From NCBI GenBank assembly GCA_038496445.1, contig JALMLS010000061.1, positions 1-64,000 on the forward strand: 64,000 nucleotides of DNA, in the 5' to 3' direction. Shown here in pieces: positions 1 through 19,112 of this stretch (its first letter is position 1; each line of letters opens with the position of its first letter). This DNA is from Trichosphaerium sp. ATCC 40318 (Eukaryota; Protista; Tubulinea). The position numbers and the translations under genes are program-made. The notes beneath the pieces were generated by a model. It did not search any database and was not told where the DNA came from. It saw only the letters and a list, made by a program, of their open reading frames with translations.

Positions 1-703
1 AACCATAAGTGAGTCCATTACGAGCTGTTTATAACGTTTTCAAGTGTATAGAGCCACCAAACCTCTATAGTTCTCGTTAGTAGTAAGAAACCAATCGCGC
101 ATACTCTTTTTGATGCTTGACATCATTTTTGACTACAAGTAAGTAATTATTTACATTGTGGGGTAATGCGACAGTATTGAATATCAGAGAACGCCTACAC
201 TTAGTATTGATCTGTCGCTCAGAACAAGTTGTAAGCGGTAATTAACGATAATAAATTCGGAGAGGTAAGAATGGATAGAGTGCCAACAAGATCATCATCA
301 AAACCGTCAACGCTATCATCTCCTAAAGTGCAGCGCTCTCATAGTGGCAAACGAAAGCCACAAAATGCCACCGCTTTGTCTAATGCCTTACATTCAACCA
401 GAAGGCATAAGTCATATCATATAGGCGAGTTACAGACCTAAGAGAAGTAAACATGCTAATATTATAATATAGGCGAGTCACCGTTAGCAAAACAGCGTGT
501 ACTACACTAAAATAAGTGATTTACAACCTAACGATTAAAAATAATAGGGCGCTTCTAAAACGGTGTATAAAAATGACAACATTGATGCTCTGTATCAACA
601 TATGATGTTTATGGACGCCTATGGGTTGGAAGTAGCTCGTAGACGTAGAGAACAAGTACGTTTCGTTTAACACCCAATTTAGATTCAAACCAAATGTCGC
701 CAT
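1..703 (-). CDS. Multi-exon putative membrane protein (3' end uncertain, may run off the window)
   Basis: ATG at 703 (MATFGLNLNWVLNET) is followed by a GTAC donor. Later short exons include hydrophobic EMIALTVLMMILLALYPFLPLR, and a clean GTATGC..CTAAC..TAG intron lies near 66-105. Confidence 0.4.
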
Positions 704-998
704 GTTGCGGCATGGAATTGTAGTTTTTGTTTGCAGGAGACCGCTATGGTTACGTTTTTGGACTATCGTTAACTTTTTGTTGCAGGAAGTAGCGAGACTC
801 GCTGGCAGGACACATTTGGATGAAGCAGTCAATTGCGTACACGCGTACGCTTTTTTGGTGGATTTTAAATATTTCACAGCAAAAACGGAAAAATACAGAA
901 AACCAAAAACCAAGCGTCTGTCACGCGCAAAAATAGTGAAGAACTGATTTTTAATCGTTTCCCAAAAATTAAAACAGTTTTTATTTGGCGGCCTCACA

Positions 999-2451
999 AT
1001 GTTTCGTTTCGCTCACATATTATGTAGTGGATTTCCTGGTACAATTTGGGCGGGTTTGAGAGGTACGTAGAATTTATTTGATTGTGACTTTGTTTCCCAC
1101 TAAAACGCTTGTAGATGGATCAATACAGGTTGTGCCTATACCAGACCAATCGGTACGTATTTCAACACTTAAGACAAAGTCTTTTAGGCCTCCTGGGCTT
1201 AGAATGCTGGATTTTTTGGTTTTTTAATTTGGCGTATTTATGCTGTTGTAGCATTCCCCAGACGGCCCTGATATGCCTATTATTAAAACTCTGAAAGGAC
1301 ATGATAAACGTGTCTATGCTATGCTTCATATAAAAGATACAATTTGGACTGGTGCCGAGGACTCTAAAATATTATTGTGGAATACTGTATGTTGTTTTGA
1401 AAACACATTTTTCGCGGTTAACTTTAAGATAGAAGCTTGAAGTGTATCAAACAATAACAGAGCATAAAGGTACTTATCGTCTATGTCATGTGATGTGTAG
1501 TTAAGTATGTATTTAGGCCTTATAAAGGCGATTATAAATGCATCTACAAAAGAATCAAGGCTGAGGGTTTTATCTGGTGATACTTCAGGATGTTTATGTA
1601 TATGGGAACCTGAGAAAAAGCCTTCTGCTGATGGCACAACATTTGCTTGTGTTGGTAAAGTTCAGATTATTGATCCTATTTGTAGTTTAGCTATTGACAC
1701 TAGTACGTTGAAGAGGACTTTTGATCTGTTTTATTTCGTTGCTGACATGTGTAAAAAATAGAATCAAAAAAGAATAAGAATCTTGCTTGGGTTGGTACTT
1801 ATATAAGCATATACTTGATAGACATCAAAGACAAGAAGGTTTATGCAAGTTTTAAAGGCCATTCAGGTATGAGGTTTGAGCGCTGTGGCTTAAGTACTGA
1901 TTTCTTTTTTTCAAAGCTATGGTACGCGGTATAGTCTTTATTAATGAGACGGAAGTATGGAGCAGTAGCTCTGATCAAATTGCAGTGTGGAATCCAGTAC
2001 GTTCTCTTGGTCATCTAAAACTATTTTATTCATTTACAGCGATTGTTGTGGATGTTAACATTGTTTTTTTTGTAGAAGAAGATTAAGAAAGGTCTCGATA
2101 AAGAGATTGAGCCGATTACTCGGTTAACACAGCATGAAGGTGCTGTTACATGTCTAGAACTAGTTAAAGTTGGTAATTATGAGCACGTATGGAGTGGTTC
2201 TTTTGATACATCAGTGCGACTTTGGTCTGCGAAGGTACTTTTTTTCTTTGTTTTTTCTCAGTTGGAGGCGTATTTCTGAATTTCTCTAGGATCGTACGGC
2301 GTTTGACAAATTAGATGCCCATCAAGATATGCTTATGGGACTTCACTTTGTGAAGGATAAGTCTGGCACTTTTGTTGTGAGTGCTTCTAGAGATAAGAAG
2401 CTGAATTATTGGCGATACCGTAATATTACAGTTAGTGATAACGAAAAGTGA
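999..2451 (+). CDS. WD40-repeat protein
   Basis: Spliced frame through about 8 GT-AG introns gives LKGHDKRVYAML..IWTGAEDSKILLWN, GHSAMVRGIV..VWSSSSDQIAVWN, HEGAVTCLELV..VWSGSFDTSVRLWS and VVSASRDKKLNYW. TGA at 2449-2451. Confidence 0.88.
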
Positions 2452-2631
2452 ATTTTGTAAATCTTACTTGTACATAAAAAAACCTGAAGACCAACAAGCT
2501 GTTAAACTGACCTTGACTCTTGTTAGACTGCTCTGACCGCGTCTCCTTTGTAGATGCTGAAGGAAACACAGCTAGCTGCCTTAATTGAAATTGTAGTTTC
2601 GTTTGAACACATTACATAGAAAGGGCGTTAT

Positions 2632-3799
2632 ATGAGTTACCCTACGCGTGATGATATTGAACATACAGAGGTAACTTCTTTTAGTAGAATGACAGGCTAA
2701 TGTGTCAAAGCTGGAGCTCAAAGAAGCTCAAGAGGAGGCGTGGGTACTTGTTAATCAGGTAAACGAAAAAGTAGCCAAAATTTGGGAAAAGATGACTGTA
2801 GAGCACCGAGACGTTAAAAAACGCAAGGTACGTAGCGCAGTAGCTATTGCATAATATCTGTTAACGAGTTGATCTCGTATCAGGCAAAACAACTGTTAAC
2901 ACGCGCCAAACATACATACGAGCAAATACAACGTTACCTGGACCAGTCAGAAAGTGTGATTGCTCTTAACACGTTACAGACTGAAAATGATCAACAAACA
3001 GGTACAGCACTTTTGCTATGAGCTAGAGGTTTCTATCGCACCAACCTTGATTAACTGTTTAACTGCTTTTGTGAAGGTCTTGATATCGACGGATTTGAGC
3101 TTATTAATGAGCCAGATGATCCAGTACCTATTAAAACAGTACAGAGATGGTGGCAGCGTTTATTACAAATAATAAGCGAGTTTTTTAAGGAGGTACATCA
3201 AGGGAGTCACTTTTGTTTAAAACTTTTATGTGACTTATTGCTTGATTCAAGGATGTTGCGCTTATGTTTGCTCCTGTTCGTCAATTTTTAACACAATTTG
3301 CGTCGTCACGTGATTCGATAGAGTCAAGGCTTATGGAAAAACAAGATGCTATTGTTGTAGAAGATGCGCTGGTGTCTTGTGAAAAGAGGTTGAAGCGACT
3401 GGAAGATACGATAAAAAGAAAAAATCCAAAACTGGCAAAAAGTGCAAAGTACGCTTGTATTTTTTGTGAGACACTACAGCTTATAATGCCATTAGAGAAC
3501 GATTTGATAAGGAATGGGATAAGTTATCTAGACACACAGATCATCCAGAAGTAGCAAAGTTTTGGTCAAAGGCAGCAATCACTTTGAGTCAATATGAAAG
3601 CGTTTTTTTAGCAAATGCAGAGAATTATGAACAAGAGAGAAGGGCACGCTTGGAAGCAGTTAAGGATAATGTGAGAAAAATGCAGATGGATGTAAGAAAA
3701 GCTAATGCTATTCTTGATGCAAGAATGGAAGCAGAGCTTGAGAAGCTTAAACATGAAGCAAATGAAGTAATCGAAAAAGTCGAGGACGCAAAAAAATGA
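2632..3799 (+). CDS. Coiled-coil hypothetical protein
   Basis: Exons joined by GT-AG introns (MSYPTRDDIEHTE|LELKEAQEEAW...). ORFs 3264-3554 and 3584-3799 are E/K/A-rich and heptad-like. Start is uncertain. Confidence 0.65.
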
Positions 3800-4011
3800 A
3801 AACTTGATTGAAGTCCTTGCTTTGTAAAAATAGCTGTACAAATAAAATTATACGTCGGAGACTAAAAGAAATTGCATCCAATGTTTACTAAGCGAAGAAA
3901 ATAGCAAATGCACTTTAAGTTAGTGCCGTTCGTTTTCAGTGAACTTTGCGACGAAATTAGGCTAACTTCTGTTTTTAACTTCTGTTCTACATAGCAATCT
4001 TGCGATTAGCC

Positions 4012-6582
4012 ATGCTAACAACACCTCTGATACACTATATTCACACATTAAACGAGAATAATCTATGGAAGTTGAGTTCTAAAAATCGTTGGACAAGGAA
4101 AACTTTAAAAGATGCCAACGATGTACCAAACGATGACGTACAGCATCTAGGCGTGGTTTTCAACAAACAACACTGCCAACGTTATGAAGCACAGTACTCT
4201 CGATTTACCTACAATAAAGAAGCACGGAGCATACCAGGGACGAAACTTCAAGCGCTCGAACGTTTTGTAAACCTCGTTTTTCTCGATTTGAGTCATATGT
4301 ACCTCACAAGCGTAGAATGGGACTTATTAAAGGTACGACCAATCTCAAACCTCCTGTCAGATGAATAATAATAATTTATCGCCAAATACCATTTTGAGTA
4401 CAGTAACCGCGTATACAATGATACTAACAGCGTCATAGCCGATGAAATCCCTCAAACGTTTGGATTTAAGCCAAAACAAGTTAACAGAGTTTGTACGTCA
4501 TTCTAGTCGCTATCTCGCTTCTAAATACCTCAAAGGAAGGCGTATGTGCCTTAACATCGCTTCAAGTACTTTGTGTTAATTCGAATAACGTCAAAAAGTG
4601 TCCAACAAGCATTGACAAACTGTTTAACCTCGAACGACTTGATTTACGTCAGAATGCTCTAAAAAGACTACCTTGTAAACTTGCTAGATGTAAGAACATA
4701 AACCAACTTACGTTATCAGATAATCCGTTAGAATTTCCTCCAAACAAGATCGTGCGCAGTGGTAAGTTAGGAGTTTTTCTCATTTTTTTCTAATATTCTT
4801 CTGTGAAACTTTGGCTCATCCTCTTACTAGGTACTTCTGCCGTTTTGGATTTTCTGTCTAGACACATAGCACGTGAGTTTTAATTATTGTTTATTCCCTT
4901 TGTTACACTAACATCCGACCTAAGCATCGGTTGTTATTGATCCCTCAACGCTTTCAAAGGATGTTAAAGCTTTTCAAAGTATGGACAATGAAAATATGGT
5001 AACTTTGAAAGGAAGTGATAGCGACGAGCTTATTAAAACACAAAAGGTTATGTGAAAACTACAATCGTGTTTGCTAAATGAATTACTAGTATTACCTTGA
5101 GGCTGCGTGCCCGATGCTTTTGAAGAACATCATTGGTAACGAAATTATTCTTGATACATCGTGCGATGTATTAAGCCAATATATATCATTCTTGCATGGT
5201 TGTACGTGCACTTTTTAAGTTGTTTAGTAGCAGAAGCTAAAAGTAACACTTAGCTGATTTGAAGCTCTCAAAAGAAAACGCACATGAAAAGCTTCTCTTC
5301 TCAAAAGGTACGCAAGAAAATCATTGGTTTGTTTTTGATTGTTATGTTAGAGTATCTACCTTTTGATGACGAATCCGAGTATCAAAATAAATATGAAGAA
5401 AGAGTGTACAATAGTAAGGTACTTACCTTCTTTGATTTCAAGATGTACATCCTAACTCAATTGTCAAGAAATTAATCAAAGAAACGCTTGAGAATATGCA
5501 CAATATAAACTTGATCATGGAAGGTATGGTACCATCGCCACCGCCTCTTCCCGGTCAACCAAATATGGCCGCAGATGATGCACCTCAACCTCCGCCAGCA
5601 CCACCACTCCCAGGCAATGCACCTCCTCCACCACCGCCACCACCTGGCGTAGCAGTACCTCCACCACCGCCTCCTCCACCTGGCATAGCAGGACCACCAC
5701 CTCCACCGCCACCGCCTCCTATTCTTCCTCATTTGAGAATTGGGCCTTTTATACCTCGTCCAAAACCTTTTCGTTTAGTTCCACCACCTAAACGAACTGT
5801 GAATCAGTCTTCAAAACATATCATCCATGCATCACCATTTGTTTATTGTGCAATGAAGAAATTGTTTATTTGTGATGATGGAAAAGATATTGTATTCACT
5901 TTTCCTGGAACAAATGATACACTAAGAGCACATAAAGCTATCCTCATCATGAGATGTGAGCACTATAAGATACTCTTTGATGGTCCGTTTAAGGACTCTG
6001 GCTCAGAAAGTAAGGAACATCGAAATATCTTCGTGTGTTAATATCTTGTTTAGTTGTTGTTCCTGATATTGCTTTTCCTATCTTCAAGATAATTTTAGAG
6101 TTTTTATACACAGACGAAGCAAAAATAGATCCTGATGATGCCGTTGAAGTTCTTCTTGCTGCGAACCAATTCAGACTTTTAAGGTTCGAATAACACTCAA
6201 TTCTCATTTTTTTCTAACTTGACATCAGACTCCAACAACTAGCCGAAGATGTGATTTCTGAATATATTGATGAAGACAACGCTGCAGGTACTACGAATAA
6301 CAAGATATAATAGTACTTCTTTATTAACATGTTGATAATATAGGGTTATTTGAGTTGACAGATAGATTGTACATTACACAACTTCGAAAACATTGTCAGA
6401 TATTTCTTTATAATAATCTTGAACTTGTAAAGTCTACTGTTGACTTGAAAGATTATTTACCTGAAGAATTGGAAAAAGAAGTAACTGGTCATGATGCATC
6501 AGAGAATATAGAAAACGAGCGTAAAAAATCAATATCAAATGTTAAGGAAAAGTTGCTTGCTATGATAGCCGTAAAACAATAA
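4012..6582 (+). CDS. LRR + polyproline + BTB/BACK protein
   Basis: LRRs (LVFLDLSHMYLT, LQVLCVNSNNVK, LERLDLRQNALKRLP, LTLSDNPLEFPP), a degenerate BTB-like segment near 4990-5200, poly-Pro at 5530-5720, BTB (DIVFTF..LRAHKAILIMRCEHYKILF..FKIILEFLYTD) and BACK-like helices. Confidence 0.85.
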
Positions 6583-6799
6583 GTTTACAAACATAAACCC
6601 TCTGTACATTGTAAATAAAGTAGATAGGTTAGAGTAAACAAAAGAGTCTTCGTGAAGCAGTTGAAAGAATGATAGTAATTGAGCTATTTGTAGAAAAGAA
6701 AGTGTTGCCATGAATGGCATGCTTTCTGAAAGAGAAATTAAGCAGTTTGGGGACTATCCTTTATTGTGTTAATGCGTCTGTCTAGTTCAACATGATTTA

Positions 6800-7894
6800 C
6801 TAATTAAGACAATACAACAATGCCAAAAAGTTGAAAACCATAAAACAAATAGAATTCAAGCTATTCGAAGAAGATGTTGTGGTTGTAGCTACACGTGTAC
6901 TTGGTGGTTGTATTGGTGCCTGTGTCACAACAACTTGAGTGGTTGGTGTGGCTGTGGTTGGTTGTACTGTTGTTAGTGATATTGGAAACGTTGGAACAGA
7001 AGTTGGTGGCAGTGTCGTTGGAAGTAGCGTTGGAGGTTGCGTTGTTGGTTGAGCTGTAGGAGATTGTGTTGTTGGTGGAGTAGTTGGAGTCTGTGTCATC
7101 GGAGGTTGCGTTGTTGGAGGAAGTGTTGTTGGAGGAAGTGTTATTGGAGACAGTGTAGGAGGTAATGTTGTTGGAGGTAGTGATGTAGGTGGAAGAGTTG
7201 TTGAAGGTAATGTTGTTGGAGGTTGCGTTGATGGAATTGGTATCCTGAAAAATGCAAAGTGTGTTTTTACGCCACCAGATTGTGGTGGAACTACGAAACT
7301 AAAATGCCAAAATGGTAGTATAAAATAAAAGCAATTTATGCTCGAACATACGTGAATGAGGTTGAATTGAATGCGAAATTAGTTATAGGGTTTGAAAAAG
7401 CTTGAGAAAATATTGAAAATCCTTGAAGTACAGTTAGCAGTTACACTTTGGTAAATTGTTTTGCTTGTATACCTCCTATAACTGGTTGGTCCATCAAACA
7501 CTCTACTATGAACTCAGGCGTCTGGTCAGTTGTGAAGGTAGCAAAGCTGTGTACCAGCGAACTACTGGAGAAATCAAATGTGTCGCCACTGAGCAAAAGT
7601 AGCAGAATACTCTATTACAGCTGTTGTAGAATTAACAATAAAGTTGGGGTTGTTTGGTTCACTAGAATTAGGTCCTAAAATATCTGGGCCAGATGCAATT
7701 CTTATTGTATATATTCCTGAATCGCCTTCACCTACATGGAGAAGTTAATGAAAAGTTACCAAAACACAGTGTTGCTATGCTGCTCTTCTTCTTTTCAAGC
7801 GTGCCAAAATACAGCTTCTCTATCTATAGCAAGTACGTACTTAGAGAAAGCGCCAAGGTGAATAGAGTACATAAACATAGAAGTGCTTTAACAT
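6800..7894 (-). pseudogene. Frameshifted inverted paralog of the mucin-like surface protein gene at 9305-10528
   Basis: ATGTTAAAGCAC versus ATGATTAAAGCAC in the paralog is a 1-nt loss that puts TAA at the end of exon 1. A second frameshift lies in the T-run near 7595-7598. The mucin exon and hydrophobic tail are intact. Confidence 0.72.
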
Positions 7895-9304
7895 TGTGAG
7901 AAAATAATAATAATAGATAGCTTAACCCGTGATACTTGACAAAAATAGCAATAGGATTAACACTGTGTTTTGTTTTGTGTTTTTTCCGTGTTAAAATAAT
8001 GGAATTAGTTGATCATCGCTAATATGGTTCTCTGATTATGTGACGTCGTTTTCGTTTAGGCGAATGCCAAAATTCGTATTGACTTAACGTTCCCGACTTA
8101 TTGGACTTTTGTGCTTCTCAAAACCGCTTCTTATTTAGCTACACAATACCGTGGTTGCTTATTTTTTACTTTTACCTTTCATTTGTTTTGTTCCCAAGTT
8201 TTGTACTTCTAGACTACTAAACGAAGACAACTGTGAGGAATTTAGTAGCATGGCAAAAGCTAACGTTGCTATGACCAACTGGAGGCAATTCGCGAAATAG
8301 AAGTGGCGTTCGAATTTTGTGTTCGAGAGCGACCGCCTACCGGCTTTGATTAAAACGAACAGGCTTTCTACTCGCTTGCATCTTGTTGAGCCATTTAGCG
8401 TTTCGATGTTCATTTTTTTTTGCAGTTTTCACAAGCTAGATTACGTATGCGTTCCACACACGCTTATCTCTACAAGTAGAAAAAGCTCCATTTAGGTGGG
8501 AGCAGAAGTTATATACATTGTACAGCAGTTAATGGCTGAAAAAACAGTTTGCTCTCTAAAATCGAACAACAATACTCTGTACACCGTTAATTACGCGTAG
8601 AGGGAGTGTGGGTGTGCACAAAACGCCGTTTAAAACAAAAAGGGCCCCTTTTGCTTAAAACTCTACAGCTGGCGCTCTAATTGTTATAGTAGTACTCTAT
8701 GCGCATAGTAGTAGTGCATAAAGTATAGACTCGTTCTCGTTAAACAGGTCATTGTTTCGGTAAGAAGCTTTCAGTAAAACTGTGTTCCCGCTAAATTATG
8801 TCTCCAAATAATCGTGCGACTTTTCACAAGCGCTTACAGACATACAAGATGAAATGATTTGATCACAAAAAACACCAAAAATCATGAAATTTCAGAATAT
8901 ACTTATGCTTTATTGAAGTGGTCCCTCAATGCCATTACATGTCCTAACCAGAGTAGCCGCATTAGAGTACTGTGCTAAGTTAGGCATATTTTGACTTCTA
9001 TAATAGACGTTATTAAGAGTGCACTAATATTTGACACTGGACACATTAGGTGTCACGAGCGTGATATTAAACTGTTGCCAAAAATAGACAAATCTCCAAA
9101 GTTTGGTGCTACCCGAAAAACCAAGAAAGTTCAAAAGTGCAAGTTGTTGTATAGTTGGTGAATGGACTTACAGGATGGAATTATTGCAACAATAGTTAGT
9201 GTATTTATAACTTTTAAGTGTTTTACAAACAAATTAATTTAAAGCCGTTGCTATTTTTGTCAATTGTAACTAACTAAGCTATCTATTATTATCATTTTCT
9301 CACA

Positions 9305-10528
9305 ATGATTAAAGCACTTCTATGTTTATGTACTCTATTCACCTTGGCGCTTTCTTTAAGTACGTACTTGCCATAGATAGAGAAGGTGTATTTTGGCACG
9401 CCTGAAAAAAAGAAGAGCAGCAACACTGTGTTTTGGTAACTTTTCATTAACTTCTCCATGTAGGTGAAGGCGATTCAGGAATATGTACAATAAAAGTTCC
9501 GGATTTTGGTAACTTAGATATTGCAGCTGATTCTAGTGAACCAAACAACCCCAACTTCATTGTTTCTGATGCAGCTACAGAGTATATAGTAGATTATCCG
9601 CAAAATGAGCACAGACTTGATATTAACGCAAATTCGGCTCGATACGACCTTATCGGAAGTGGCCAAACTGTAGCTCTTGTAATAGAGTGTGTAATGGATC
9701 AACCAGTTATAGGAGGTATCAAACTACAAACATCTTATTTTTAGCACTTGTTTAGCCAAAGTATTCTAACATTTCTTTTAGGAATTACTTTAGTTTCACA
9801 TAATTATACAAACGCTCCAAATTCTTTCAATTTCACTGCAACGTCATTCACGTACGTTCGATTAGTAACGTCCTTTAATTTATATTAAGTTTTTGCGTTG
9901 TAGTTTCACAATTGCGGCGCAGTCGCCAGTAACTACCCGCCTGGCTACTGTAAGTTTTCAGATAGCTACTTTGGTTCCAACGACATTGCCTCCACCTCCA
10001 ACAACGCTACCTCCAACAACACTTCCTCCAACGACACTACCTCCAACTACGCTACCTCCAACAACATTACCACCTACAACGCTCCCTCCAACAACACTTC
10101 CTCCAACAACATTACCTCCAACGACATTACCACCAACAACACTACCTCCAACAACATTACCTCCAACAACGCTCCCTCCAACGACATTACCACCTACAAC
10201 ACTTCCTCCAACAACACTTCCTCCAACACTACCGCCTACAACACTATCACCAACAACGTTTCCTCCTAAACCATCTTTGCCAACAACACAACCTCCTACA
10301 ACACTGGCACCAGCTTCTTCTCCAACGTTTCCAATATCAATAATAACAGTACAACCAACAACAGCAACGCCAACAGCAACACCAACAGCTACTCCAACCA
10401 ATCAAGGTGTTATGACACAAGCACCAATAATACAAGCATCACCTGTAGCCTCTTCATCCAATAAGCTAATTTCTATGTATTTTATGGTGTTCAACTTTTT
10501 GGCATTGTTGTGTTGTCTTTATTTGTAA
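9305..10528 (+). CDS. Secreted mucin-like, probably GPI-anchored surface protein
   Basis: Signal peptide MIKALLCLCTLFTLALSL, three GT-AG introns, a globular domain of about 130 aa, a (TLPPT)n stalk, then SSSN and a hydrophobic C-terminus. Confidence 0.85.
9978..10260 (+). repeat. 15-bp coding tandem repeat encoding TLPPT (about 17 units)
   Basis: Units such as ACAACACTTCCTCCA and ACGACATTACCACCA; translation PPTTLPPTTL... Confidence 0.95.
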
Positions 10529-14611: not shown

Positions 14612-17600
14612 ATGACTGACTCTAATGGTATCACTGCCAGCGGTAATTGGAACACTGATGGGAACGCAGATCTCGTTGTACGCAAAGAACAAAGTGTAAA
14701 GAAAGCCAAAATCTCATTATTATTGTTTAGAACAGAGAAACAGTATCGTATACTGAAGACCCACAAGATCATTTACGTAAGTTATTCTTACGTTATATAA
14801 AACCCAACAAGCCTAGGGATGAGCAAGTTTCTTCGACAGGATAAAAAATCACCGTTGAGTGTTAGACGGTCTAAGAAGTTGCAAGCCTCAAAACGAGCAA
14901 AAGCAAATAAAAACGAGAGTTCGGCGACTAGCAAGTCTCCATTGTCTCCAAGGTAACTCCCATTGCTAAGCTTTTAAATTAATGTGCTGTTAAGAATAAA
15001 AACTACAACTCAAGTCGATAAAGAAATACCACAAGCGTTAGAGATACAAGATGAAGCACGCTCTCTTCTTAATTCGAAAAAAGGCTTAAAAAAATCAAAG
15101 AAGTTACTTAAAAAGTCTGCAAAAAAATCAACTGTATCGGTACGAGACTAGCGTGCAAATTTCGCCCTTGTTCTAAAGCTTAAATAGACAGAAACTAAAA
15201 CAAAAGAACAAGAGATAAAGATGAAATCACCAAAAAGAAGAAAAGTATGACAAACATAACTTGTTGTTTAAGATCACGTGATTCTTATTTTTCCTTAGCC
15301 TCCAATTCCGCCTCCAAGAACAATTTACGATGATCACTCAGAAGAGATGAAGAAGAACAAGCGCAAAAAACCTGATCTACCTTCTGTGCCTCAAAGAACG
15401 TACATTAACAAACCTCAACAGATAGCAGCTCCTGCAATACCTCCAAGAACGTATGCCAACGAAAACCAAACCGTATCCGAAGTACCTCCAGAACCTAACG
15501 TTGATAAAATGAACGGATACTCACAACAATATAAATCCAAGCAAGGCATTACACCAAAGAAAAAGACAAAATTCGCTTCTCAATTAAAACCTAAATTCTT
15601 GGGAGCAAAAACAAGTGCTTGCAGGGTTTTCTGGCATGTTTATATTGCCATGTTACTAACCATACTGTACGCTAAACCATGTTGTGACGTTTTAAGTCTA
15701 ATCCACATACACTAGGGTATCATGTCTCTTGTTTCTCAACAACTTTTCAAACACAGCTGCAGCAACAAAGTTGTATATTAAAAATCAATGCGCAGATCTT
15801 GAAGTCATCTCAACAAACGTTGCAAACATTCACGTGACACTAGCAAAAACATCAAATGCATTCATAGAGGAAGCACTAAAAAGCGGAGCGACAGTTGGTT
15901 TAGACTTATCATTGAAAGGTGTTTTTGTGGCAGTTGACGTACGACAATAACTCGTTAAGATAGTCCTTACCCGTTTCTAGGTTGGTATTTTTATGCTTTC
16001 TTCTAAGCTGAGAGTGCTGCTATGTGGTTACGATGGTATGGTTAGCCTATTTAATCCAATGTACGTATTACTGACATATATACCGATGCAGCTAACCTTG
16101 AAATAGCACTGAGCTTCTGGAGAAAGCACAAGATACATTTAAGAGAACAGGTGCTAAGATTAAAGATGCGCTTGGGTTCAAGCGATCATTGGAACAACTT
16201 AGCGATGCTGACAGAGATGCTATTCTTCAAGAAGTTTCGGATGAGCTAGATACTTCATCAATTGAACTAGAACAACAAGCAAACGCTACAATAAACATCA
16301 CTGGGCTAACAAATATCGGGTTCAATGAGAGCGAACTATCTCTTTCAAACGGAACAGCTGACTCTGTACGCTATTCCGGCACTCTAATCATGCTTACTCT
16401 TATAGGGACTTAATCTTCCTACGGCTGACGTAATACAAGAGGCTTTGAGAGACTTCATAAAAGGATTACTTGACGATCTACTGACAGAAGAAGTAGAAAC
16501 AATAAAGTACGTGAAAAAAAAAAGAACGAAGTCAAAATCTTATTGTTCACCAAGGGAGAATGTAAGAAATGCATCAATAGCCACGTTCCCAATACCCGTA
16601 TACAACGAGATTAAGTTTTGTAATCGGCTAAACTTCAAACCTTATGATGCTGCTGTGACTATTATAAAGCTGATGTCTATTGGCGTAGTAGTATTGATCA
16701 TTGTTGCTATTGGCATTACATGGGTGGGTCTGTACAACGCTCATAAAGTCAAAATTTGGGTAACAAATCTCAAGAGAGTTAAGAAAGTATCTAACCGGCC
16801 ACCGTACGTTCATACCCTTGACTTAGTGCGACGGATTAATGTCTTTCTTTTAGTAAAACACCAGAAGAAGCACCAACTATGTGGCTTCTTGAATTTGTTA
16901 TGTGGAAACCAGCTATTGCTATCATCTTGGTTTCTCTTTTGACAATCATTGTATTCCATGCTTACCTTGCTGGCATCAATGTAGCATCAACCGAAATCAA
17001 TAAGTGGGTTGAAACTGAAGTAAGCGATTTTGGAAGTGGTATTGTGTCTGAAGTGAACTCCCTAATCAACGACACAAATGATATATTTCAAGTGAACTTC
17101 ACAAACGTAAGTCCTTTTTAGTTGCCTCGTAAGTGGTGTATTCTTAATAAGTTTTATAGGCTCTAACACAGAGTAAAGATTCCTTAAATGAAGCTTTTGC
17201 ATCAGCAGACAGGGCGCTGAATAAGCTGGCGGATAGAATCGAAAACTTAAAAGAGTACGTCTTCAATATTCTTGTATTTGAAAGCGCTTACGTTTTTCTC
17301 TATAGAGACCTTGTAGACGAACTTGGGAAATTCATTACAACGTTTATTGCAAATATTCTAACTGAACTTATCTCTTGTCTCCTGTTTCTTGATGACATTG
17401 TTTTTGTGTTGAGGTAATCAAAACAAGTTTCCCAATTTTTTCTTACTTTCTTAAAGAGGAATTGGTCCAATTCTTGCTGCTATTCCTGACTCTATAATAC
17501 CTTCTTCAATAACACTCCCTGAAGTACCTACAATAAGCAACGTGGTTGTTGATAGTTTCGTGGATAGAATACGTATGTTTGCTTTAGTCGAAGATATCAT

Positions 17601-17794
17601 CTCTAACTTCTTCAATAGAACTTTATGTTGATGAATTTGTTGCCAACGAAACAGCATCTGTTACAGCTCAACTGCTTTTTGATTATATAATATTAGTCTA
17701 TGGATTATTCATTATCATTGTTGGCATAGTAGGATGGATTCATTTCAAGCGAAGCTCTAAAACAGTCACAATGATGGGTAGTGATAATGTATAA
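14612..17794 (+). CDS. Prm1-like multi-pass membrane protein with long basic/Pro-rich N-terminal extension
   Basis: Spliced product contains KPKFLGAKTSACRVFW..TM..NQCADLE..NIHVTLAKTSN, LRVLLCGY, LPTADVIQEA, FPIPVYNEIKFC, TM, WLLEFVMWKPAIAIIL, ELISCLL, ITLPEV and a final TM. These blocks follow the order seen in fungal Prm1. Confidence 0.7.
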
Positions 17795-17857
17795 AAAAAG
17801 TAAAAATTGTAAATAAACATTGTTAGTAATTGAAATCACACAATGTTTGGTTGTTTA

Positions 17858-19112
17858 TTAGCTTTGTCCAGTTTGAATTACATTTTCCACGTTTTTTCTT
17901 CTGCTGGCCCAATTGTACGGATAAATACGTTCACGCCATGATGGAATGATCAATGTCAATACCAATATCGCAATCACAAGTAATATAACAAGCACAGTGA
18001 TGACCGCTACAGGTATTATAGGAAAATCAGAACCACCATCTGGTTGAGATGAACAAGATGAAGAAAACAAAATAACTAACTTTCCACGTGTATCTACAGC
18101 AGGTCATTTTAAGGAAAAGCTATAACTTTTGTTTTTCTATCAAGTGTCACTTACTTTCTGTAAAGCATGAGTTGATATTGTCTATAAGCGAGATGTTTTG
18201 TTGGTCAACGACACAATCATCTCTGAAGTTAAACAATGGCAGCATATCGATTTTCTGGAACAGCAACTTAATATTTACAAAACCCAAAGAACTCACGTAC
18301 TTGAACAGCGTTTGTATCAATCGTCACATTCTCGTTGAAAGTAGGACATCCTCCAATTGATATTGAAGACTTTGAATCGACCACAATCACTGTATTCTTT
18401 AGAAACACAACATCTCCTGAGATCAATTAATTAAATTGGTTTGTGAATGTATGTTTTGTACCTGGTGCCGTGTAATTAATCCCTACAACAGAGAACGGGT
18501 TTCTTATGATTATTGGACCAACACAATTAATTAGGGCAGACCTATTACAAGGAAGATCATTGAATCCTAATTCAAATCAATACATTACAACAAACAAAAA
18601 TTAAAATACCATTTTGGCGCATTACAAGACACCTCTCTTGTAAATTAAAAGCTACAAACGTAGGCTCTCCTGTTAGGAAATGCATTTTCAGAAACTGATG
18701 CGAAGTCCCATTGCTGCCAGACATAAATAAATCTGTGTCAAAGAAAGTTTTACCACTACTCTGCCATGTGAGTGATGATAGTGCATCCTCACAAACATTA
18801 CAATCAGTGTCATTTTGTTGACAACTCAAACACAATTTAGGGTTATAATCAGTTGTTTGGTTACGTCGCGCATTAACCCACAGGGTGCCCGTTGAGTTCG
18901 CATTTTGTTTCCAAAATACGTAGTCTTCAACAGTAAGTATTTCCGGGAGTGTTTGGCCACTAAACAAGTATAAGAATAAGAAGGATGCTAATCACGTGCG
19001 TTTGTTCGCAATAATTAGTAGCGTCAGTAAAATTACCAACACTAGACGTATGGACCATAGGTAAGCTTGTATGTACGAGCAAAACAGCCAAATACCAACG
19101 CAAATGAAACAT
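17858..19112 (-). CDS. C-type lectin-domain type I membrane protein
   Basis: Signal peptide MFHLRWYLAVLLV, GNFTDATNYC..LPEI..LWVNA..WQSSG..ERCLVM..FNDLPC..INC, then a C-terminal TM (IIPVAVITVLVILLVIAILVLTLII) and short tail. The first intron needs a GC donor (18999). Confidence 0.75.

Follow-up and report, generated by a model that had tools for sequence, protein, structure and literature searches.

The gene at 14612-17794 on the plus strand of a 64,000-nucleotide stretch of the genome of Trichosphaerium sp. ATCC 40318 (contig JALMLS010000061.1, positions 1 to 64,000; this whole stretch is called the window below) very probably codes for a true, if divergent, Prm1 family protein (PF27758), for which a role as helper of membrane fusion like that of yeast Prm1 is inferred. 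An earlier note made from the sequence alone had proposed a Prm1 homolog in a non-fungal amoebozoan genome at this position. This proposal is supported by profile searches, by profile-profile alignment and, for a paralog designated P0001, also by language-model features and by shape. Residue numbers refer to the revised 825-residue model of the spliced product.

Sequence similarity to fungal Prm1

A profile (A2) was built from the two exons at 16556-16801 and 16855-17106, their counterparts in four paralogs and one further paralog in which both exons are fused. It spans only 173 positions and was applied for searching 1.84 billion representative proteins, 15 of which matched at E ≤ 1e-3. Among them were P0001 (801 amino acids, E = 1e-49), a protein of 1317 amino acids from Pyxidicula operculata, two metagenome proteins of unidentified eukaryotes, protein P0006 of the basidiomycete Atractiella (E = 1.2e-5) and several fungal fragments, the fungal matches ranging from E = 1e-5 to 7e-4. 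The relatives of P0006 carry the NCBI/UniRef name "plasma membrane fusion protein PRM1" and all have PF27758, the family that is named PRM1 in the ESM Atlas. A precomputed match to PF27758 also exists for P0001, which shares 40 % identity with the protein encoded in the window over the full length of our first-draft model (BLASTP) and 351 identical residues with the revised model (global alignment).

The whole spliced protein was compared with a hidden Markov model (HMM) of 59 fungal Prm1 proteins and scored 39.4 bits; none of 500 shuffled sequences exceeded 5.2 bits, and its reversed form gave 7.4. Two collinear pieces make up the match, HMM positions 13-337 on residues 236-568 and HMM positions 394-536 on residues 579-719. 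Profile-profile alignment by hhalign against 31 aligned fungal Prm1 proteins (A3) placed the exon 16855-17106 (89 %, E = 2.2e-6) and the exon 16556-16801 (68 %, E = 4.9e-5) at collinear positions; the match of exon 15717-15938 was also collinear but weak (E = 0.006). With P0001 as query the same alignment gave 98.0 % and E = 2.2e-13 over 427 columns. The scores of the shuffled and reversed sequences put the similarity to Prm1 well outside what chance would produce.

Other searches contributed less. Pfam scans of ten exon translations, of P0001 and of other matches gave only noise, the scanned Pfam set being one without PF27758. Word-index searches with P0001 and with an alignment of non-fungal proteins (A4) returned only P0001, probably as the low-complexity tail consumed the words, and are uninformative on distribution. 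An ESM Atlas feature search with one exon of 84 amino acids gave no usable match.

Predicted topology and conserved blocks

The product of 825 amino acids is predicted to be a glycoprotein that spans the membrane four times, exposes two large, helical loops to the outside and ends in a short C-terminal tail. Four strong hydropathy spans are located at residues 260-282, 527-549, about 594-618 and 785-807 (transmembrane segments TM1 to TM4), and two weaker hydrophobic stretches lie within the loops. Nine of the eleven N-x-S/T sequons are found in the TM1-TM2 loop (loop 1, six) and the TM3-TM4 loop (loop 2, three), while the N-terminal tail and the TM2-TM3 loop are basic and predicted to be cytosolic. 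This distribution of sequons and basic residues agrees with termini inside and both large loops outside, and the arrangement expected of Prm1, with four spans, two outer loops and cytosolic termini, is predicted for this protein. The earlier note had described the loop following TM3 as helical and rich in N-glycosylation sites. The helical nature of that loop held up, but the richness in sequons fits loop 1 better than loop 2.

All sequence blocks that had been named in the earlier note are present in the spliced product and follow each other in the order given there. The first, PKFLG..RVFW (residues 248-262), aligns to the fungal "LkP.YLg...ltW" block and runs into TM1 (15590..15743, residues 248-282, across the intron 15667-15715; hydropathy peak 2.25). 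Loop 1 contains the block NQCADLE..NIH (15783..15833; QCADLE..NIH at residues 297-312) with Cys298, a hydrophobic domain with D336 and D347 that ends in Cys362 (15894..16025, across the intron 15939-15980; LLC at residues 360-362), and LPTAD at residue 464. The block FPIPVYNEIKFC (residues 505-516, including Cys516) precedes TM2 (together 16586..16720, residues 505-549; hydropathy peak 2.85), and W..KPAIAIIL (residues 587-602) leads into TM3 (together 16882..16977, residues 587-618; hydropathy peak 2.54). Loop 2 comprises ISCLL (17370..17384; ISCL at residue 715) with Cys717 and, outside the part aligned by the fungal HMM, ITLPEV (17509..17526, residue 747), for which the earlier note names V.FP as the fungal counterpart. 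TM4 (17669..17737, residues 785-807; hydropathy peak 2.62) is followed by a C-terminal tail of only 18 amino acids. All these elements are encoded on the plus strand.

The N-terminal tail (14612..15613, plus strand, residues 1-255) is long and basic and has no hydrophobic segment before TM1; lysine and arginine together account for 24 % of the N-terminal stretch in the first-draft model. A regular-expression search of the spliced protein located three PxxPxR motifs in this tail (15302..15448, plus strand; residues 152, 178 and 195), just as the earlier note had claimed. Each of them is followed by T and then by I or Y and matches the class II SH3-ligand consensus, and they are kept only in part among the paralogs. 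It may be speculated that the motifs of this proline-rich basic tail dock SH3 or other cytosolic partners.

Conserved cysteines and proposed mode of action

In the HMM alignment Cys298, Cys362, Cys516 and Cys717 fall on all four cysteines that are invariant in 31 fungal Prm1 proteins. With respect to P0006, Cys298 lies on C60, Cys362 on C124 and Cys717 on C518. Yeast Prm1 works as a covalent dimer that is formed via Cys-120 and Cys-545 (Engel et al. 2010, PMC2868043). The first of these cysteines comes directly after a conserved hydrophobic domain of loop 1, which carries two acidic residues, and the second sits where loop 2 is most conserved (PMC2868043). In the amoeba protein Cys362, preceded by a hydrophobic stretch (333-361) that contains D336 and D347, takes the place of Cys-120. 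The equivalent of Cys-545 is Cys717, which is part of a LISCLL sequence aligning with the fungal "likCli" block and is encoded in an exon that is among the best conserved between the paralogs.

By analogy to yeast, the amoeba protein would form disulfide-linked homodimers, with Cys362 of one chain bound to Cys717 of the other, and would act where two plasma membranes appose, making successful merging more likely than lysis. The fusogen proper would be another protein, such as HAP2, which the Prm1-like protein would assist. In this multinucleate amoeba such a role would mean cell-cell fusion (plasmogamy) alongside HAP2.

Gene structure and transcription

The gene is intron-rich and, in the refined model, consists of 16 exons that encode 825 amino acids, its extent of 14612-17794 being exactly that given in the earlier note. 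Exons 1-4 are located at 14612-14677, 14731-14776, 14817-14952 and 14995-15139, exons 5-8 at 15188-15244, 15299-15666, 15716-15938 and 15981-16060, exons 9-12 at 16107-16365, 16406-16506, 16555-16803 and 16854-17106, and exons 13-16 at 17160-17254, 17306-17413, 17457-17572 and 17619-17794. All 15 introns have GT..AG ends and a length of 40-54 nucleotides, and the reading frame stays open across them.

A first model with 15 exons and 839 amino acids, which already included all the blocks listed above, was dropped after comparison with P0001. In that model the first open frame had wrongly been read through to 14776, whereas the paralog calls for an intron at 14678-14730 and a different acceptor (14817). 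The revised N-terminus (MTDSNG..NADLV / NRETVSY..HLR / MSKFL) aligns residue for residue with the transcript-derived P0001. From the third intron onward, 13 of 13 intron positions lie within one amino acid of those of P0001, which was mapped exactly on its own locus.

Direct support for splicing comes from a public sequencing run (X1). A spliced contig of 702 nucleotides from this run begins at the exon start 16854 and joins the last five exons at 17106/17160, 17254/17306, 17413/17457 and 17572/17619, covering the last exon to 17745; the in-frame intron 17255-17305 is removed in this transcript. A second contig stops at 16802, one base before the exon end at 16803. Thus, the gene is transcribed and spliced, and the 3′ half of the model is confirmed by RNA. 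The 5′ half is predicted on the basis of conservation.

Just 3′ of the gene, short RNA-derived contigs of the same run are present at 17817-17948 as well. One of them shows T>A at 17884; a loose end of another, at 17905, may mark a splice site. An open frame on the minus strand at 17858-18070 encodes a small single-span protein.

Paralogs and a probable second allele

The whole assembly (70.28 Mb, 642 contigs) was searched with one exon and with the profile. It contains exactly six Prm1-like loci and, on contig C558, a probable haplotig copy, the family being spread over five contigs. A second locus is located on the same contig as the window (C147), about 65 kb downstream, at about 82.5-85.7 kb. 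Contig C54 carries two loci that lie about 30 kb apart on opposite strands, contig C78 carries one, and contig C156 carries a divergent one. In tblastn, four paralogs matched collinearly over almost the entire protein, whereas in the C156 gene the match sets in at TM1.

The two copies on C54 (about 71.7-74.9 kb, minus strand, and about 100.4-103.6 kb, plus strand) are near-identical. They form a recent inverted segmental duplication, because the open frames upstream of them are near-identical too. Contig C558 (14.7 kb; region 1-10000) corresponds in reverse orientation to positions 18033 to about 8769 of the window, with 99.1 % identity over 6.2 kb and 94.6 % over a further 3.5 kb, and the match takes in the 3′ two thirds of the Prm1-like gene. 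This copy most likely represents an uncollapsed second allele (haplotig) and not a true duplicate.

In the C156 paralog (92600-97400, minus strand; 1560-2108 and 2400-2963 within this stretch) the intron between the counterparts of the exons 16555-16803 and 16854-17106 is missing. Its loop 1 harbours a Pro/Thr-rich, mucin-like repeat of TTEAP.VP units, which none of the other five genes has. P0001 matches the C78 locus (96600-101400, minus strand) exon by exon, except for a one-base frame jump at residues 631/632, near the end of the exon that corresponds to 16854-17106, where the transcript reads ..NNIF AKNFTT and the genomic frame ..NNILQRTSLP. For this jump there are two explanations, an error of one base in the assembly or a difference between strains in the C78 paralog.

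Proposed role in membrane fusion

PRM1 was scored as restricted to opisthokonts by Tekle et al. 2017 (PMC5892394), and in reviews Prm1 figures as a fusion helper of yeast and fungi that is also considered for lineages without HAP2. In a later study a gene designated PRM1-a (TRSP15481) is included, next to HAP2, in the list of plasmogamy genes of Trichosphaerium sp. (Tekle et al. 2023, PMC10521059, Table 2). The statement of the earlier note that Prm1 is usually described as fungal is fair, but there is this 2023 entry for Trichosphaerium. The identifier TRSP15481 does not occur in the published supplements that were searched, and PRM1-a may or may not be the gene described here.

Several observations weigh against a Prm1 protein with a yeast-like role. 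Identity to fungal Prm1 amounts to only about 20 %, and nothing in the aligned fungal proteins corresponds to the long N-terminal tail. The PF27758 match belongs to the paralog P0001, the exons of the gene itself having been scanned against a Pfam set without the Prm1 model. Around the first dimer cysteine, the spacing from the acidic residues to Cys362 is unlike that of E104, D112 and C120 in yeast, and the HMM alignment needs an insertion of three residues there. RNA support comes from one sample, is confined to the 3′ half, and does not separate the locus from the 99 %-identical C558 copy. The organism has six paralogs besides HAP2, so that some copies may do something other than mating fusion, and fusing cells have never been seen in Trichosphaerium (PMC10521059).

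The strongest of the alternatives is that the protein has the fold and ancestry of Prm1 but a job other than mating fusion. For the six paralogs this might be plasmodial self-fusion or fusion compatibility, membrane resealing, or phagocytic or test-related membrane remodelling. We regard such a somatic role as a serious though minor possibility. It would agree with six loci plus an allele-like copy and with the strong divergence of the paralogs (about 40 % identity), as well as with HAP2 being already there as candidate gamete fusogen in an organism in which fusion was never seen in culture (PMC10521059). Moreover, the published PRM1-a was detected in medium-sized cells only, without statistical support (PMC10521059). 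Nevertheless, experiments have so far tied the family only to membrane merger in mating and between hyphae, the dimer cysteines needed for this role are kept, and the present data point to none of the other processes. A yeast-like helper function in cell fusion is the preferred reading. Within this preferred function the six paralogs may, speculatively, have diversified for separate fusion contexts or for compatibility.

Distribution and origin of the family

The A2 search revealed only two amoebozoan clusters, those of Trichosphaerium and Pyxidicula, both members of the Tubulinea; no protein of Dictyostelium, Acanthamoeba or Entamoeba was among the matches to its 173 positions. Pyxidicula operculata is a testate amoeba of the Arcellinida. 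Its protein (P0003, EukProt EP01125_P001297, 1317 amino acids) consists, by eye, of two tandem Prm1 modules with eight predicted spans, and each module has the FC block before TM2, KPAL or KAAL before TM3 and the Cys blocks. No account of a Prm1 doubled in this way was met with, although no search aimed at one was made. Two metagenome groups of Prm1-like proteins (P0004 and P0008), apparently from GC-rich eukaryotes, group with the amoebozoan and not with the fungal proteins in our small tree. A member of the P0008 cluster (P0025, ENA ERZ27249803, contig k141_395983) has PF27758 in a single frame of 522 amino acids.

This tree is a quick maximum-likelihood tree of 22 rows without outgroup and with long branches, in which the fungal rows are nearly all from Basidiomycota with one from Smittium. 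It separates the 16 fungal rows from the six non-fungal ones (four amoebozoan, two unidentified) with a value of 99 in the Shimodaira-Hasegawa-like approximate likelihood ratio test (SH-aLRT), and the amoebozoan rows stand on one side of a branch with support 85. The earlier note had named phylogeny among its checks. As far as the sampled fungi are concerned, the amoebozoan rows are not nested among them, which speaks against a recent transfer from these fungi; an ancient origin is not established by this, and the choice between ancient origin and transfer is not decided by the tree.

A relatively recent horizontal transfer of the family from a fungus would account for the patchy distribution, with two tubulinean clusters and no match in the well-sequenced Dictyostelium, Acanthamoeba and Entamoeba, and foreign genes in the Trichosphaerium genome were stressed in the 2023 paper (PMC10521059). 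We consider it unlikely. Besides the split at SH-aLRT 99 with amoebozoan rows outside the fungi, which has to be read with the nearly exclusive sampling of Basidiomycota, the missing outgroup and the long branches in mind, the identity to fungal proteins is only about 20 %, and the family is spread over five contigs. In addition, the genes have 15-16 short introns of the host type at positions common to the paralogs, and the GC content equals that of the rest of the window (about 37 %).

The converse view is that Prm1 is not a fungal invention but was already present when Amoebozoa and opisthokonts diverged, if not earlier. It would have been kept in tubulineans, and the six diverged Trichosphaerium genes would act with HAP2 in plasmogamy or specify fusion partners. 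This wider scenario is doubtful at present, and we put it forward tentatively.

Comparison with other multi-pass membrane proteins

The gene product might also be just another helical protein with several spans, like Tweety, prominin or DC-STAMP, without specific affinity to Prm1, a possibility that the earlier note had raised against its own proposal. Feature and shape searches were performed with residues 215-801 of P0001. In the language-model features PRM1 clusters lead (0.93, 0.92 and 0.91), while prominin (0.85) and Tweety (0.82) clusters are among the lower-ranked matches, both under the lead threshold of 0.9. An AlphaFold2 model of the same residues is all-helical, with a mean predicted local distance difference test value (pLDDT) of 70 and a predicted template modelling score (pTM) of 0.50. 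Its best shape match in the ESM Atlas is a PRM1 cluster, with a template modelling (TM) score of 0.40 over 369 residues. Foldseek against the PDB yielded nothing at E ≤ 0.001 with this model; TTYH2 was in the list at E = 0.8-1.6 (TM score 0.12-0.17). Chains of Tweety, prominin or DC-STAMP proteins were neither among the top 50 of an exhaustive structural search nor in the Atlas shape matches. The Pfam families Tweety, Prominin and DC_STAMP gave no match at E ≤ 1 with P0001 or at E ≤ 10 with the exons. With PRM1 clusters first by features and by shape, and with the sequence statistics all in favour of Prm1, membership in one of these other families is very improbable.

The contig is amoebozoan and not fungal. 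Apart from the mainly fungal distribution of the family nothing favours a fungal contaminant in the assembly, a possibility also named in the earlier note, and it is practically dismissed by the paralogs, which share the intron style and reside on contigs of 147-307 kb within this assembly, by the position of Trichosphaerium Prm1 outside the fungi in the tree, by matching spliced transcripts in a run labelled with the same organism and P0001 as product of a spliced transcript (JGI/IMG source), and by assembly statistics that agree with the published Trichosphaerium genome.

Significance and comparison with known systems

That PRM1 is listed for this amoeba is already known, as is the fact that the Pfam PRM1 model catches a paralog. 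The present data extend this modestly by the locus with a checked gene model, by the family of six genes, by the four retained cysteines and by the relative with a double module in Pyxidicula. In an amoebozoan that has HAP2, a core of four spans, a hydrophobic domain in loop 1 and two dimer cysteines is kept at about 20 % identity. We therefore argue that these core features, rather than fungus-specific parts, carry the function, and that Prm1 and HAP2 are not mutually exclusive. The six paralogs would be markers for an unseen fusion or sexual stage of Trichosphaerium. If Prm1 is indeed older than fungi and acts together with HAP2, the family would offer a molecular handle both on this never-observed fusion stage and on the mechanism of Prm1.

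Tweety (TTYH) proteins and prominin share with the amoeba protein the multi-pass architecture and long helical outer domains, but the resemblance is weak and below threshold, and neither sequence nor structure matches rise above background. PRM1-a of the 2023 study (PMC10521059) derives from the same organism and belongs to the same family; it is represented there by a single gene identifier without sequence analysis. The C78 paralog P0001 resembles the protein by 40 % identity, 13 shared intron positions, the N-terminal start and all motif blocks, and differs in its separate locus, in having 17 instead of 16 exons and in a diverged cytosolic tail. The Pyxidicula protein P0003, likewise an amoebozoan relative, clusters with those of Trichosphaerium, but its module is doubled and its branches in the tree are very long.

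A further comparison is that with fungal Prm1, such as Prm1p of S. cerevisiae. Many basidiomycete Prm1 proteins have 750-1076 amino acids, compared with 621 for the partial P0006. From the fungal proteins the amoeba gene differs by an identity of about 20 %, an altered spacing in the hydrophobic domain, 15 introns and six paralogs per genome, and its product by a basic N-terminal tail of 255 amino acids with PxxPxR motifs and a C-terminal tail of only 18 amino acids. The product shares with them the collinear blocks, four spans, two large outer loops, the four invariant cysteines and, ahead of the first dimer cysteine, a hydrophobic loop-1 domain that contains acidic residues.

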